Shown piece after piece: positions 13,726 through 44,556 of a stretch of DNA of 64,000 nt. The notes beneath the pieces were generated by a model. The model was not told where the DNA came from. It made no database searches and saw nothing but the letters and a program-made list of their open reading frames with translations. The stretch is from assembly GCA_009103225.1 (NCBI GenBank), contig RHPI01000260.1:786317-850316 (forward strand). The letters are read 5' to 3'. The stretch comes from Chlorokybus atmophyticus (lineage: Eukaryota > Plantae > Mesostigma and Chlorokybus algae). The position numbers and the translations under genes are program-made. Position 1 is the stretch's first letter. Every line of letters begins with the position of its first letter.

Positions 13726-16700
13726 ATGGAAACAGAACAAGGCGCTCTGGCTCAAATCACCCATCAATACGCTGACATAGCAGAGGAGGTAAGCATTGTG
13801 ATTGCCCTTGCTTACCTCCTCTGCTATTCTTACATTGAATGCGAAGACAGCAACCTCACGTTGTTATCAGCAAGCGCAAGCGGGAGATCCACATGGAGAC
13901 AGCGTGACTGTGTCTCTCGAACCATCACATGCAAACATACGCACACCTGATGTCGCTGCAGAGGAGCCGTCGCATATCTGCCACGAGTGCGGCAAGAGTT
14001 TTTGGACCAGAAGGTCCCTGCTGGGGCACCAGATTCATCATCGTAGTGCTTCAATGAAAGGTATGCAATCGTGCCATACTGATTTCCATTGCATTGCAGC
14101 ACAGCTAAGTCGTGTGCATTTTGAGTTGCAGATATGGTTGAAAGCAAGAAGCTGAACCGGCTCAAGAAGAAGACAAAGAAATGTCAGCCACATGCACTGC
14201 CACGCTCAGTTCAAGTTGTAGTGATTTGTCACACGAAGAGTTAGTTCTGTTGCAAGTAGTCTGATATTAAACCTTGTTGGCTTGTTCAGTAACAAGCATT
14301 GAAGCTCCCGGCAGCGATGAAGTGCAATCACAGCCGCAAGCAGAACTGCAGCTCGTATTTGCTCAGTCGCAGCCTGAAGCTGAAGAGCAGAGAGAGCAGA
14401 CACCTGCGTTGGAGCGAGAGCAGCATCATGATCAGGCAGGCAGTGACAGCTGTCACCAGGCTTCCACAGCTGGTCCATCTCAGCCTGCACAGCCAACACT
14501 GAATGGTAATCAGCATGATATCAAGGATCAGCCCGAAGCTGCTGAGCCACGTAGCAGAGTCAAGAAGCGGAAGATCAAGCCACGCTCAAACCGTGCACCC
14601 GATGGTAGCTGGGTATGCGACATATGCCACGCGCGATTTAGCGACGGACAGTCTCTTGGCGGTCACAAAACTGGCCACCATTATCAAAGTAAGGCTTGCT
14701 GCTTACGCGCACACACGCACGCGTGCGCACGTGCTTACACAACACTTCCCTTCCCTCTTCATTGCATGCCATGCACCCAATACAAAGCACACATGCACGC
14801 ACGCTTGCGTGCACACACACACGTTGACTGTCCGCAAGTGAGGCTCACTCCCTCAGCTGCTCACCCACGCGCTCTCTATCTTGCACAGGCATGCACGCAT
14901 GCATGTGGGCACGCACACCAAGTTACTGGATCTGACCTCCATGTGACTGATAGGACGGCAGGCAAAGATGCGTGCCGCGGACATGGCGACCGTCAACGCA
15001 GCAGCGCTATACGCCGTGCAAGGAGGAGGAAATTACGCACCGTCAACTAAACCTACCACAAACGCGATCACGCCAGACACGGCTTTACCAACCCAAGCTC
15101 AAGTGGCATTGCCCGCCGGGCCTACGAAGCACAAACTGACAGCAACAGCCTCCTTCAGCCACGCAGGAGGACAGCAATCAGAGAAGGTGGTTCACATCTT
15201 GTCACCAAGCGCACCGTTGAACATAAAAGCAGCAGCTAGACTCAGCCCCATCCACGAAGCCCTGCCGACCACTTCTGAAGCTCCTGTAAACGTTCCCAGC
15301 ACAGCCTCTTTGGAACGTACTGCACCAAGCCATGCATTTAGGTGAGTGTAGTGTGGACTCAACGATCTCATGCTGTGTCAACTCTTGTTGCCAAACTGTG
15401 TTGCAATTCATCTTACACATGCATGCGCACGCACACGCACACCCACGTGCACAGACATGCACAGGCATGATGGTTACTGCAGTGAGTCTTTTGCGCAAGC
15501 GGAGGCCGCATTGCAGTCACCTGTTGCGAAGCGGCTGCGTCCAACTCGAGTCGCGAAGAGGTTCCCTGAAGACTCGCTGGCTGCTGCTTCGCATGCGTCA
15601 AAGAAAAGGTTGAAAAGATCCAAAGCCAGTGTCAACACGCGCCAAAACTCCTCAAAGCACTCACGGTACCAACAGATGCTCCGTGGCCAAGGCAGTTCAA
15701 CCACGTTGTAACTCAGCACACGTTGTTCACATGCTGGCAGGCTGGTTCGCGAGAGAAAAGCAACAAACGTCAACAACAGTCCTTCCAATGGCGTGCAAGG
15801 CGATAGAAGCTTTGCAGCCCGCAGAAGCGTCGCGCACTCTGCCAGTAGATCCATCGCACAGACTGCTGCATCAACAGCGTTTGTGGACTCCACTTACGAT
15901 GAACAAGACTTGCTGCCTGGCAGCGCCATGGCTGTCATCCCCGAAGGTGAGAACACTCTCAAGGATGTGTATCCACAACTGTTAAGTCACTTGTAACTCA
16001 CGCTCGGCGAGTCTCCCTTTGTCAGCGCTCACTCGAACGACAGTGACGCCAGCTGGCGATGATATTGACAGCATGGGCACACTTTCCGACTCCGACTGCG
16101 ACACGTACACTGAGTACCTGAAGGGTTCAGAGACTGCCGCCAGCGTGCATGTGCTCACACCGCCACAAGCAACTGCGACCGTGACGGTGAGTTTGTTGCA
16201 TCTGTGCATGCCAGTGACAGGATGAAGATTGTAACAGTCATAGTGTTGCACACGCAGCCAAGGCGCAGTCCTGCTAGACTGCCTGGAAGCCTGCCAGCTG
16301 GATGGATAAGGCTATTGGCGCAGCGCAACGATGGTGAAGGGTATGGCAACACTGCTGAGAACTGGCATTGTCACAAGTCCAGTGGATTTCTTGTCCTGTG
16401 ATCAACAACTCTCATCGTCAACCTCATGCTCTGTGTTCTGCAGCATCTATGCTGTGTGCTATCGCACGCCCTGCGGCTGCCTGCTCTGGTCTCAGCAAGA
16501 TATGAAAAACTTCCTTCTGACCAAAGCTGGCGACACTGACTATTGGCATGTGACACCTCTGCAGGTTCATTACACGTGATGTTGTGTGCTGTTCCGTCTC
16601 ATCGCCAGCCTGTTGAGCACTCACTGCGTACTTGTTGCACAGTTCTCCTTCAACCTGAACCAACCGCTCGGCATGCCGATGCCAACTCAAGCAGCATCTG

Positions 16701-37486: not shown

Positions 37487-40400
37487 TCAAGGGTTCTGCA
37501 TGCACAGTCCCTGGGACCGCATCCAATCAAGCCAAGAAGACCAGATGGGATTGCTCCGAAGCGTGGCTGCATTGCCAGCAACAATGACTCCGCGTTTAGC
37601 GCGAGTCAGCGCCACATTCAATCGCCGCGGGTCAACCAGAAAACCCAGTTGGCCCCTGGAATTGGAGCGTACAGTAGATATGATAATCACCTGCACCAAC
37701 CACAAGTGTATGCTACACCGCAGCATGACCTCATCACATCTTTGTGTGGAACACTTGCTATGTTTGCAACGGTGACGTTGTTGGTTATAGGTACAAAGAA
37801 TGCATGTTGTACCTCTTTCTCGCGCCCTTGAAAGCCATCGACAGTTGCTATCTCCAAGTTGTCTCCTATGCCGCTTGCCTGTTACAGGTAGGAACAAACT
37901 TGTACACACCAATCTCGCATTGAATCTGAATGACAGCAGCAGGGTCTCAGGGTAGTTACCAACCTGGCACGTCTCAAGCAGCAAGGCTACTTGCGCTGAG
38001 TATGGAGATATAATGCCAATGTCATCTTCAGTGACCGCGCCATTGGCCAACAAGCCTTGGACAGCATTTAACACCTGGCATGCATGCTTGTTTGTGAGAA
38101 ATGAAATGCCATTGCTGCAAGAATTGGTTCAGTAGTCACAAACGCCATACCAAGTCTGCCTCTCTTTGGTTGAAGTATGATGGGCTGCCCTGCCTGCTGT
38201 TTTCAACACCTAAGCACTGGATAAAAGCGAGGGGTCTTGTACTGTCCGGCCAAGCAAATCTGTCACACAACAGGTCTCTTAACTGTTAGCAAGGTGTGCA
38301 CGACATAGCTTCATGACAACCGCAGAACAGTGGCTCCATTACCCTGCAGGTGGTGTGCGGCCTTCAGGTGTTGGGAACGAGATCAGTCGGTTGCTGTAGA
38401 ATGTCTGTGATGGGAACTCAGCTATGGAGGGGTGCATTCTGTCAGGACACAGCAAAGTTGAGCGTTGCGTTCATTGCATTTGGCTTCTATGCTGGCAGAG
38501 GTAAGCTCACCTGTACTGTGTGTTCAATAGCATCGGCGCAACTCCCGCAGTTTCAAGTCTTTCGTACAAACTAATATCCAGCCTTGCCTGTGGCAAATAC
38601 CAAAACCATGTTGCCACAAATTGTGCATGCATGCAACCGGCATTGCTGCAAGGAACTGTTGTAGGAATCAACACTTGTGCCTGAGTTGAGTCATTGGTAG
38701 GCTACCTCAAGAGCCTTTTGTGAGATAACCGTTGGCGGGAGCTGCTTGGGGTCTCCAACTAGCAAGGCGCTCTCCACGCCCAGGCTGAGTGGAATGATGC
38801 ACACTGGTTCCGTGGCTTGCGTGGCTTCATCAATGACGCATAGTCTGAACTTGCGCCCAGCAAGGATGTCACCACCAGCGCCAACACAGGTTGCGGCCAC
38901 CACATCTGCATTGTCTATGATCTGACCAGAAACGCACATATAACCAATTTTGTACACTCGCACCTGATAGAGAGAAGTCAAAATTGGTGTACCTGTTTTG
39001 CAACCTGATCCTCTACAGCTTCCATGAGTTGTTGGTCTGATCGACTCCATCGCTTTCTTTGCACTTGCTGAGAAGCAATCTCTTGCACTTTTGGATGTGC
39101 CGCCACCAACGCCTCTAGTGAGCGTTGTCTCAGCGCGGGTTGCATCTGAACAATCGCTCGGACTTCATTATGCATCAAGCAGTCAACCCGCATGTGTGCG
39201 ATGTGCAAACCCGCAGTTCATGAGCACACCTTGACAGGTTGACCGATGCGGACAACACGGACACCCAATCCAACCAATCCAGAAACCATGTTGTCCACTG
39301 CGACATTGCTGGACAAGGTCCACATTGCACGGATTGGTTTGCACAGCAGTAGCAAACAGCCAGGCAGCACGCAAGCTCACCTATCAGCGCATGCCAATAC
39401 TTGATGGCCTGTAAGCTGACGGCAAAGAGCAATGAATCGTACGACTGTGTGAGTCTTGCCAGTGCCTGCTCAAACAGGATAGTGTTCAACAGCTGTTCCA
39501 TGTGTGCAGAAGATATCGCGCTTGCCAATAATGTTCATGGTCAACACTAACATGATGCAACAGCAGATGTTGGCACCTGGTGGCCCTTGCCACAATGTCA
39601 GTCGCCGCTGCAGAGCCACTTCAATCGCTTTCTTTTGACTGTCATTCATTCTCTGCAAGCCAGCACTGCTGTCGAAGGCTGCACCGCTGTCCGTTGTAGG
39701 AGCTGCAGCATCCAGTCTTCGCCGTAATTCCCCCCGCAGCTGCGCAGCATGTGTCACAACAAGTGCTGACTTTGCTGTGGACGTCCAGATTGGAACAGCA
39801 TTATTGGACAACACGAGTGGAAGGTAACCTGCCCAGCTGCGGCACCCTTGGCCCAAGGTGAAGTGCAATCAGCCATCATGGTCATGCTTTCTGCAGAGCT
39901 GTCACCTGTCACGAACAATTGCAAGCATCAGTAATGCTAGCAGCCATATTGCACAGCGTATGAGATCCTCCCACCGTGGTCCAACAACAAGGCACATGCG
40001 GGTCTCAACATTCTTGCATCACTACACGTGTTGTGCACACTCTCTTATACCATCAAGCGTGAACTGCAAGATGATATCGCGCAAAGGGGCGCGTTGATTG
40101 GGAGGGGCCTCTGCCAATGTGTCAAGGGCAGCACAGGCCCGAGCGTGCGTGACCTGCACACCGAAGCATCATTGAGTGTCCGACACTGCCCTCAAGCTGT
40201 GTGAAACAGACCAAAGAGTATAGGCCAGCGGCTGTGTACCGAGCTGGTGGCAAAGTCAACGCGCCATTTTCCGCCATGGACGCTCACTATGCTTGCTGCC
40301 TGATTGGCTGGGACGGCGATCTGGAGGAATCTGAACTATGGGTCAAGCACAGCCTTGTATTGCTACCACAGTGCATATTAGGTGGTTGTTGTGCGCCTCA

Positions 40401-41837: not shown

Positions 41838-42908
41838 TGCATTTAGTGTCTTAACACGTTAAGGCACTGATTGCTGCAACGCTGACGCTGACGCTATTTG
41901 GGCGGCAACGGTAGCCAAAACCATTGCCAAAACGGAACAAGCGAGAGAGATCTGGATTCAGGCGGCGGTGTTGGCGGCATAGCTGGCGAGATCTGTGCGC
42001 CGGGCGGCTGATCCGGCGAGCTGGTTGCCTTACGGGTGTGAGAGTGCCTGTCTTAGGAGGCGGGGAGCTTGTGCAGCGCTCGTCGGGCTGCGTTGTGTGA
42101 AGGCGAGCATCGGCTTGCTAATCCTGCGTGATTGCTGCCTGGCCTCCGGTGCTTATCTCGTTTTTGCCTTGTTTGAGTTGAAAGGCTGATGGTTTTTATG
42201 CTGTAGGCTTTTAGCTGTTGTCGTCAACCTACGCCAGCTTTAAGCCTGGGATCTTCCCTTGTGTAGGATCTATCAACTTCAAACTTTGATGCTGTTGCGG
42301 GCAACACAGGTAAAGCCTACTATCCGAAGCGTTAGCTTGTTCCTTGAGCTCAGATGTCCGTGATCTGTGCACACTCTCTGTATGTTAGCACCACCTCCAA
42401 AGCAAGTATGTCGACTCAGCGGCCATCTGACCATCTGCAGTGCTGTGCAGGTCACTGCCTTGTTTCTAAGCACGCAGCTTTGCGATGCTGGGCTGCACGC
42501 CTTCACCCACAGTAACGAGCTGCTTCCCTTTAAGGTGTGGTAGCAAAGCTAGATTGTAATGAACGAAGGCTAGCTGCTCGTACATTGCCACGCTTGATGA
42601 CTTGTATTGCAGGAGAGGTGACGCAAGTAGGTCACACTTCCAAAGGCATAAAACAACCCACACGCATAGAAGAACAACAAAGAAACAAGCAACAAGATGG
42701 AATCGTCAGGTTAGCAATTGGCATTGACTCTTGCCAAGCAAAGTGGTGTGCATGCTGGCTCGAAATGGACAAGTAGCACAGACTTCACAGTTCTTAGTGT
42801 ACTGCATATATTGAAGCTATATATTGAAAGGTAATGCTTAGCAGACCGTCAACGTTCTATCATCTGCAGATTCGTCGCGCAGTCATAGATTACGCTCAGC
42901 ACGCAAAC

Positions 42909-44556
42909 ATGCACAGCTGCACATGCTCGAAGGAGGATTCACAGGACGCTACTTCTCCCGTTGGCAAGGTGAGCATTGCTGCAGCCCTTGCAACTTGACA
43001 GCTCACTGTGCTCTACGCGCCATCATCGTTGTTACAATGTGAACTAATACAGCATGTTGTTGATGGGGTTTACTATCTGCCACTCAATCATCTTGTGCAT
43101 ACAGCGTGCTTCCCCGTTGAAGTTATTAAAGCGCAGTGGCCAAGCTAATGGGGTCAATGCCCGAGGGGCCACAGCGGTTGTATGCGCAGTGGCATTGGCT
43201 GCATGCTTAGCGGCTGCAGCCACAACGCGCTACCGCGCCTTCCCTTTCAATTTGTTTGCGACCCCAGCCCCTGCGACCCCTCCACCTCCTCCCGTTGTTG
43301 CCGCCGCTGCACCCGTCACGACACCAGTCACAGTAAGCTGATGACCGGCATGCTGCAACGCAATTTCGTGTACATGTGCGCCTTGCACGTTGCCCAGCGA
43401 CATGTTGGCAGTCAGTTGATTGACTATGTTGGTCAGGTCCCCAAGCCACAGTCACCCACTCTCAGAAAGCTATTGCGAGAGGTGCGCGCAGAGGCTATGG
43501 CAAAGGGTGTCTCCCAAAAAACACTTGAGCGCTGTCTTCGAGACCTGCAGCCTATCCCCGCTGTCATTGAGGCGGACAGAAACCAGCCCGAGTTCAAGAT
43601 CAGCTTTCGCGAGTATATCAACAGGGTTGTGTGTGACTTGCGTATCAATGAAGGTGTCGAGAATTTCAAGCAACATGGTGATCTGCTCAAAGGAGTGGAA
43701 ACGCGTTACGGAGTGCCTGCTGATATCTTGACTGCACTTTGGGGCGTAGAGTCCAAGTAAGCATTCATGCCAGTGTAAGGCAGTGTTCTCATGTTACCTT
43801 AGCCTCATTCGTAACGTTCTGGCCAGTTATGGAAGGGTAACAGGTGACTGGGATGTGATGCGCGCGCTGGCTACGCTGGCCATGGACACAGAGAGGGTGA
43901 GTGCGCCAACAACGTGGTGATCATGACGACGATGATGATGATGTTAATAATTGATTATTATTAGCACTTCATTGTTTCTGGAATTGCTGGGTCACATGTG
44001 CTTTGGTCAACAGCCCCGGCGAGCGGCATACTTCAAGAACGAGCTCATTGAGGCGTTGATGATTGTGGAGGCAGGGCATGTTGGAACAAGCGGTGTGCTG
44101 CGTGGCTCGTGGGCTGGTGCCATGGGTCAGCCGCAGTTCATGCCTTCTTCATTCCGTGCTTACGCCGTTGACCATGATGGCGATGGTTGCGCCAACATAT
44201 GGGACTCTCGTGCAGACGTCCTTGCCTCCATCGCCAACTACCTCGTACGTAATGGCTGGCAGGCTGGCCAGCCTTATGCACAGCAAGTCACGGTGCCACG
44301 CGGCTTGGATTCAGCGCTGTTTGGTCTTAAGGTTGACCGAACCATTGATGAGTGGTGGGACTTGGGCTTGCGATCTGCCATTGCGGATGAAGAACTGCCC
44401 GTGTCCTCATTGAAGGCTTCATTGGTAGCACCTGATGGTCCGAGTGGGCTTGCCTTTTTGGTGTATCCCAATTTCCGTGCTGTCATGCGCTACAATTCTT
44501 CCACCTATTATGCTGCCTCTGTAGGGCAACTTGCGCGAGCCATTGCTCGCGGCTAG
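42909..44556 (+). CDS. mltB: Lytic murein transglycosylase B (GH103/SLT_2 type), intron-containing, with an N-terminal hydrophobic anchor; 5' end may extend upstream
   Basis: ALWGVES|NYG (catalytic Glu), ALATLA, YFKNELIEAL, GSWAGAMGQPQFMPSS, VDHDGDG (Ca-binding loop), LASIANYL, YPNFRAVMRYNSSTYYA. At least four GT-AG introns. Confidence 0.93.

Follow-up and report, generated by a model that had tools for sequence, protein, structure and literature searches.

MltB of Escherichia coli, a lytic transglycosylase, is a lipoprotein. A homologue of MltB in moss was reportedly found by Utsunomiya in 2021, as told in the papers that cite that study, to be needed for chloroplast division. All streptophyte algae encode ten core enzymes of peptidoglycan synthesis (PMC7455551), and the peptidoglycan of moss has been located in the intermembrane space (PMC12681378). 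The locus described here comes from the alga Chlorokybus atmophyticus and lies in a window of 64,000 nucleotides (64 kb; contig RHPI01000260.1 of assembly GCA_009103225.1, positions 786,317 to 850,316 of the forward strand), whose own numbering is used throughout. By its place in a protein tree and by intron positions held in common with other streptophytes, the gene at 42909-44556 is the Chlorokybus nuclear orthologue of the green-plant plastid "MltB" gene. Its predicted product looks like an intact, active and complete family-3 (GH103, SLT_2) lytic transglycosylase. We propose, with a probability of roughly 60%, that this protein has a transit peptide followed by a single membrane anchor, and that a Pro-rich linker joins these to a catalytic domain placed in the intermembrane space. 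A preliminary description of the locus, made by reading the DNA alone, had proposed instead that a bacterial type of lipoprotein anchor survives at its N-terminus, and much of what follows concerns that proposal.

When the five GT-AG exons of the preliminary description are spliced, they give an open reading frame of 406 residues (1221 nt) on the forward strand that closes with a stop codon at 44554-44556 in the last exon (Table 1). The exons were searched one by one against Pfam and NCBIfam, and all scores given here are therefore per exon and not for the whole protein. SLT_2 (PF13406) is covered over its full length by exons 3, 4 and 5 in order, with 91, 21 and 210 bits against a cut-off of 24.3, a match far beyond chance. 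Since introns interrupt the domain, they must be removed to restore it, and the claim that the gene is split by introns is thus borne out. The motifs on which the enzyme was first recognized are also where they had been placed: WGVES, with its Glu codon at 43749-43751, GAMGQPQFMP, and DHDGDG at 44170-44187. The same holds for the remark that a C-terminal peptidoglycan-binding domain is missing, as Pfam scans found none and the protein ends 5 residues past SLT_2. In alignment with SltB3 of Pseudomonas aeruginosa, WGVES falls on WGMES (exon 3 against SltB3 residues 55-145) and DHDGDG on DFDGDG, and the latter fits the D-x-D-x-D-G pattern of an EF-hand-like calcium loop, making it a putative Ca site. 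The Glu and Ser of the Glu-Ser motif, the motif GSWAGAMGQ.QF.P and the three Asp of the loop are invariant in seven eukaryotic homologues, and the Chlorokybus protein keeps every residue that is invariant among those seven. Following published work on Slt35 and SltB, we take the Glu of WGVES to be the catalytic acid.

The best NCBIfam family is TIGR02283 (MltB_2), with 87.2 bits for exon 3 and 203.6 bits for exon 5; without the small exon these add to about 291 against a cut-off of 248.45, although this figure is a sum of pieces and not a whole-protein score. The models for the E. coli type of MltB were tried and rejected, with 42.8 and 135.5 bits against a cut-off of 281.4 for TIGR02282 and 22.7 and 119.6 bits against 449 for PRK10760. 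Because these scores fall well under the cut-offs, the Chlorokybus protein belongs to another subfamily than E. coli MltB, and its profile scores place it nearer to MltB_2/SltB, a subfamily of mostly soluble enzymes, than to the lipoprotein of E. coli.

Table 1. Features of the Chlorokybus MltB locus and of its surroundings (positions within the 64-kb window).
Feature	Position	Strand	Details
Candidate first coding exon, absent from the preliminary model	42485..42534	+	Start codon of public model Chrsp12S08683; donor GT
Candidate second coding exon, public model only	42613..42709	+	AG/GT borders; basic, Ser/Thr-rich, transit-peptide-like
Exon with the ATG of the preliminary model (42909-42968 in that model)	42870..42968	+	Public model: exon from acceptor at 42870
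Intron, 136 nt, GT-AG, phase 0	42969..43104	+	Contains in-frame ATG 43054
Exon with basic stretch, hydrophobic segment and Pro/Ala/Thr-rich linker	43105..43332	+	Hydrophobic GATAVVCAVALAACLAAAATT at 43165-43227; linker 43228-43332
Intron, 104 nt, GT-AG, phase 0	43333..43436	+	
Exon with linker end and N-terminal third of SLT_2, up to WGVES	43437..43756	+	SLT_2 profile 4-99, E = 9e-26
Intron, 70 nt, GT-AG, phase 2	43757..43826	+	Splits codon after WGVES; common to Klebsormidium and Selaginella
Small exon coding (N)YGRVTGDWDVMRALATLAMDTER	43827..43896	+	SLT_2 profile 101-123, E = 3e-4
Intron, 117 nt, GT-AG, phase 0	43897..44013	+	Common to Klebsormidium and Selaginella
Last exon: C-terminal 60% of SLT_2, with GSWAGAMGQPQFMPSS and DHDGDG	44014..44556	+	SLT_2 profile 122-292 of 292, E = 5e-62
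AAA_12 open frame (superfamily-1 helicase)	37490-38128	-	E = 2.5e-23
Two C2H2 zinc-finger motifs	13979-14041 and 14616-14681	+	Second in open frame 14271-15047, zf-C2H2_6 E = 1e-7

A public protein of the same species (jgi/Chlat1/1514/Chrsp12S08683, P0121, 445 residues) maps onto the window at 100% identity from 42485 to 44553 and differs from the preliminary model in two respects. First, it has two more exons at the 5′ end, which add 62 residues, and the ATG at 42909 then falls within its third exon; an in-frame stop lies at 42467, upstream of 42485. Second, it splices out 43482-43550. This piece (69 nt, in frame) codes for 23 residues with aligned counterparts in the SLT_2 profile, in residues 55-77 of SltB3 and in all homologues, and exact exon mapping indicates that it is not intronic in Klebsormidium or Selaginella. 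The "intron" that removes these conserved residues probably reflects a mistake in the annotation or else a minor isoform. Possible start codons stand at 42485, at 42909 and, likewise in frame, at 42834 and 43054, and the last of these brings in an alternative of its own. If translation began at 43054, inside intron 1, the protein would open with MLLMGFTICHSIILCI... as a signal peptide for the endoplasmic reticulum, and the enzyme would be secreted and act on bacterial walls outside the cell. The reading frame runs on from this ATG into the next exon without meeting a stop, and the hydrophobic run of 16 residues with which it opens resembles a secretory signal. We nevertheless give this very little credence. 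Both the preliminary and the public model remove the stretch at canonical splice sites, the orthologues bear long transit-like extensions rather than N-terminal signal peptides, and the family of the moss orthologue is, in the accounts of citing papers, tied to chloroplast division. The organism also retains the full pathway of peptidoglycan synthesis (PMC7455551).

Homologues were gathered by word searches and one exhaustive profile search. They came from the algae Mesostigma, Klebsormidium, Spirogloea, Closterium, Cymbomonas and Prasinoderma, from the land plants Selaginella, Diphasiastrum, Riccia and Physcomitrium patens (XP_024379744.1), and from several transcript-derived contigs. The main tree (IQ-TREE, LG+C20+F+G4, 73 rows, 291 columns, unrooted) places 15 green-plant sequences and one environmental contig on one side of a branch with an SH-aLRT of 99, and Chlorokybus is sister to Mesostigma, matching the species tree; a FastTree of 139 rows concurs. 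Two proteins were omitted from the trees, a Diphasiastrum fragment (P0323, 270 residues) and the model from Closterium sp. Naga37s-1 (P0325, 773 residues), and in the latter the profile matches five separate stretches, all beyond an extended N-terminal region of low complexity, so that it has the appearance of a fused or fragmented gene model. The environmental protein inside the green-plant clade (P0343, from an ENA contig of 1632 bp) probably comes from an unsampled green alga. Exon structures were mapped exactly for Klebsormidium and Selaginella, and both species have, at the same positions and in the same phases as Chlorokybus, the phase 2 intron that follows WGVES and the phase 0 intron that follows ...DTER. 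Since these two introns are common to Klebsormidium and Selaginella, the gene already lay in the nucleus and carried introns in the streptophyte ancestor. A recent bacterial transfer, or contamination of the assembly, might be suggested by the last exon, which has about 55% identity to the best bacterial proteins and so comes close to the 58% of Mesostigma. The gene, however, has four to seven spliceosomal introns, of which two are common to other streptophytes, it belongs to the strongly supported green-plant clade, and its neighbours are eukaryotic. The common intron positions and the tree together refute this alternative, to which we assign next to no probability.

Where the green-plant clade acquired the gene is a separate question, and the preliminary description had left the choice between cyanobacteria and proteobacteria to a phylogeny. 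Bacterial sampling for this purpose took in the best 80 of 596 genome loci, and within that sample the nearest named bacteria in the unrooted tree are mostly Alphaproteobacteria. A cyanobacterial origin is not favoured there, as the sole cyanobacterial homologue among these loci is nested among proteobacteria and far from the plant clade. That homologue, an MltB_2 protein of Halotia wernerae UHCC 0503, sits among alpha- and gammaproteobacterial sequences, which suggests a transfer into that cyanobacterium. Within this sample and an unrooted tree, the placement thus speaks against the cyanobacterial option. The single green-plant clade, reaching as far as Prasinoderma and Cymbomonas, fits one early acquisition.

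In the public model, the 104 residues ahead of the anchor hold 20 Arg and Lys against 5 Asp and Glu and are 20% Ser and Thr, and this basic, Ser/Thr-rich N-terminus may be a chloroplast transit peptide. The hydrophobic segment GATAVVCAVALAACLAAAATT has 21 apolar residues with a Kyte-Doolittle maximum of 2.22 over 19 residues, and a Pro-rich stretch lies directly C-terminal of it. Such a segment would act as a stop-transfer sequence in the inner envelope membrane and be kept as an uncleaved, single-pass anchor. Because four basic residues (Lys or Arg, within 16 positions) come before the segment and two (both Arg) after it, its more basic N-terminal side would face the stroma. The Pro/Ala/Thr-rich linker would then extend the catalytic domain into the intermembrane space, where the enzyme may cut the MurNAc-GlcNAc bonds of plastid peptidoglycan and leave 1,6-anhydroMurNAc ends. 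Cutting of the glycan in this way would let the peptidoglycan layer be remodelled, grow and split when the plastid divides. In 11 of 13 orthologue N-termini, the extension is separated from the domain by a hydrophobic segment.

The main rival to this arrangement holds that the same segment is a cleavable export signal, that a plastid type I signal peptidase cuts it at an Ala-x-Ala motif, and that the mature enzyme is soluble in the intermembrane space. Most of the 197 close bacterial relatives inspected have Sec leaders ending in Ala-x-Ala, and the nearest solved structures, SltB3 and SltB1, are "soluble" enzymes. Candidate cut sites (marked here by a slash) can be read within the Chlorokybus segment as ALA/A, LAA/A and AAA/T, after the Mesostigma segment as LAAA/E and after the Physcomitrium segment as AAA/S. 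The uncharged hydrophobic stretch of most orthologues, however, runs to 18-22 residues, which is the length of a helix anchor, and a long Pro-rich spacer makes most sense in a tethered enzyme. We therefore regard cleavage as rather unlikely, if still worth serious attention. Several points weigh against the anchored arrangement. Type I signal peptidase could also cut at the Ala-x-Ala motifs that lie within and behind the hydrophobic segment; the hydrophobic stretch of Selaginella, at about 12 residues, is too short for a helix anchor; and neither the land-plant-like transcript P0202 nor the Closterium model has a hydrophobic segment. With several possible start codons, the transit peptide is a reading of amino-acid composition only. 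XP_024379744.1 is only a candidate for the moss MltB gene that was disrupted.

The proposal that a bacterial type of lipoprotein anchoring persists in the plastid envelope started from the tetrapeptide LAAC, encoded at 43195-43206 (residues 51-54 of the 406-residue model). On this account LAAC would serve as a lipobox: Cys54 would receive diacylglycerol from a plastid Lgt, and a plastid LspA would cleave the chain ahead of that residue. The tetrapeptide is indeed at that position and does fit the strict lipobox pattern, [LVI][ASTVI][GAS]C; it is also preceded by a basic stretch and 12 hydrophobic residues and followed by the Pro-rich tether. The fit is formal only and not above chance. In ATAVVCAVALAACLAAAATT two Cys stand amid Ala, Val and Leu, and 20% of 100,000 shuffles of these 20 residues contain a strict lipobox. 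A second match, VTSC, occurs in the public N-terminus in a non-hydrophobic context. Moreover, Cys54 is the 14th of 21 apolar residues and is followed by seven more (LAAAATT), which puts it inside the hydrophobic core and not at its end, and its distance from the start of the protein, 54 to 117 residues, depends on the start codon chosen. No Pfam or NCBIfam family was matched by the exon at 43105..43332, which codes for this N-terminal region. Since that exon matches no family, there is nothing bacterial in it to "survive".

Comparison with relatives leads to the same result. The preliminary description had named conservation of the LAAC Cys as a check, and the orthologues do not show such conservation. 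Of the 13 N-termini, only two have a Cys that fits, those of Chlorokybus (LAAC) and Selaginella (VVAC); none was found in Mesostigma, Physcomitrium, Riccia, Diphasiastrum, Cymbomonas, Prasinoderma or three transcript-derived land-plant-like proteins. The sister lineage, Mesostigma, shares the anchor and the Pro/Ala linker with Chlorokybus yet lacks a Cys at that place. In Selaginella (P0239), VVAC closes a short hydrophobic stretch at residues 84-93 (LAAVLVVVAC), which can be counted in favour of a lipobox; a membrane helix would need more residues than this. In Diphasiastrum, also a lycophyte, the hydrophobic segment has 19 residues, none of them Cys. E. coli MltB does set a precedent for lipid anchoring, but the algal protein is not of that type (43 + 136 bits against 281 for TIGR02282), and among the 197 close bacterial relatives with a leader, only five show a strict lipobox within their first 45 residues. 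Additionally, Ycf48, a known cyanobacterial lipoprotein, lacks a lipobox in photosynthetic eukaryotes (PMC8038367). A literature search on Lgt and LspA in plastids or algae returned no report either way, the abbreviation "LGT" being in use for lateral gene transfer as well. The lipoprotein interpretation did not hold up in any test run in this analysis and is highly improbable for Chlorokybus. That LAAC and VVAC are both genuine lipoboxes, and that an Lgt/LspA pathway works in the plastid envelope of some green lineages, would be just as hard to credit. Most likely, LAAC is a chance by-product of a helix rich in Ala, Leu, Val and Cys and not a lipidation site.

Returning to the anchored enzyme, a role at the plastid wall is a reasonable expectation that we infer from orthology and from the literature outlined at the outset, the Chlorokybus gene being orthologous to land-plant genes that include the one for the Physcomitrium patens protein (SH-aLRT 99 and common introns). 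Pfam scans of the window's 131 open frames of at least 110 residues matched six families only, none of them related to peptidoglycan, and no gene for peptidoglycan synthesis was found among these frames. The neighbouring open frames code for C2H2 zinc fingers, a PH domain and an AAA_11/AAA_12 helicase. Such neighbours are in keeping with a eukaryotic chromosome and with the earlier statement that the gene is embedded among eukaryotic genes. An AAA_11 match (E = 2e-27) lies elsewhere in the window from the AAA_12 frame, and the two probably belong to one helicase gene of several exons, which lies on the opposite strand some 5 kb upstream of the MltB gene. The first of the two zinc-finger motifs (13979-14041) is upstream of the open frame that holds the second. 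Scans of the 64 kb for tRNA genes and Rfam families returned nothing. Between 60001 and 62000 the G+C content falls to 0.43, from a value of about 0.51 in the remainder of the window.

As the preliminary description itself remarked, the gene type is not new. The observation of this gene is correct, and it concerns a kind of gene that is already known: the sequence falls in the same clade as the moss and lycophyte genes and is present in the public Chlorokybus annotation. The family has already been tied, reportedly, to chloroplast division in moss, and that streptophyte algae have peptidoglycan in their plastids is already accepted, so the gene alone adds little. Of modest use are the hydrophobic segment and linker, which are widespread in the clade and suggest how a normally soluble periplasmic enzyme stays at the plastid envelope. 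The finding that the nearest bacteria to the plant clade, in the best 80 of 596 loci, are proteobacteria and not cyanobacteria is a second point of interest. A lipoprotein in this place, if true, would be a real surprise, and the evidence here is against it.

Among solved structures, the best match to the algal protein is SltB3 of P. aeruginosa (PDB 5ANZ; last exon E = 4e-41) and the second best is SltB1 of the same species (PDB 4ANR; E = 5e-30), with the motifs WG[VM]ES, GSWAGAMGQ.QF.P and D.DGDG in alignment. These bacterial enzymes lose a Sec signal peptide by cleavage and reside in the periplasm as soluble proteins, whereas the algal protein has a predicted eukaryotic targeting extension and an internal hydrophobic segment. 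SltB3 (420 residues) also continues for about 75 residues past the aligned domain, a tail that the algal protein lacks and that we take to be a peptidoglycan-binding domain. E. coli MltB, known in structure as Slt35 (PDB 1QUS and others), belongs to the same SLT_2/GH103 fold family (last exon against Slt35, E = 7e-26) and is more distant from the algal protein than SltB3 or SltB1. It is an outer-membrane lipoprotein, and the algal protein scores below its equivalog cut-offs. For the proposed topology, the closest parallel is a protein of unrelated sequence. ARC6 is a single-pass protein of the inner envelope with its C-terminal domain in the intermembrane space, and the topology and import route suggested for the Chlorokybus enzyme (transit peptide, stop-transfer helix, C-terminal domain in the intermembrane space) would resemble it by analogy only. 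The nearest relatives are the green-plant plastid MltB homologues. Physcomitrium XP_024379744.1 (P0344), Mesostigma Mv06464 (P0122, 58% identical to the Chlorokybus protein), Selaginella LOC9649294 (P0239) and Klebsormidium nitens P0097 all fall in the same clade (SH-aLRT 99), and the last two have two intron positions in common with Chlorokybus, which retains only these two of the six domain introns that Klebsormidium and Selaginella share. The linker is short and rich in Pro, Ala and Thr in Chlorokybus and Mesostigma but longer and not Pro-rich in land plants, and two Cys happen to sit in the hydrophobic segment of Chlorokybus. Across these differences the green-plant proteins have one plan in common with the Chlorokybus enzyme, in which an N-terminal extension, a hydrophobic segment and a linker lead into an SLT_2 domain that is not followed by a peptidoglycan-binding domain.

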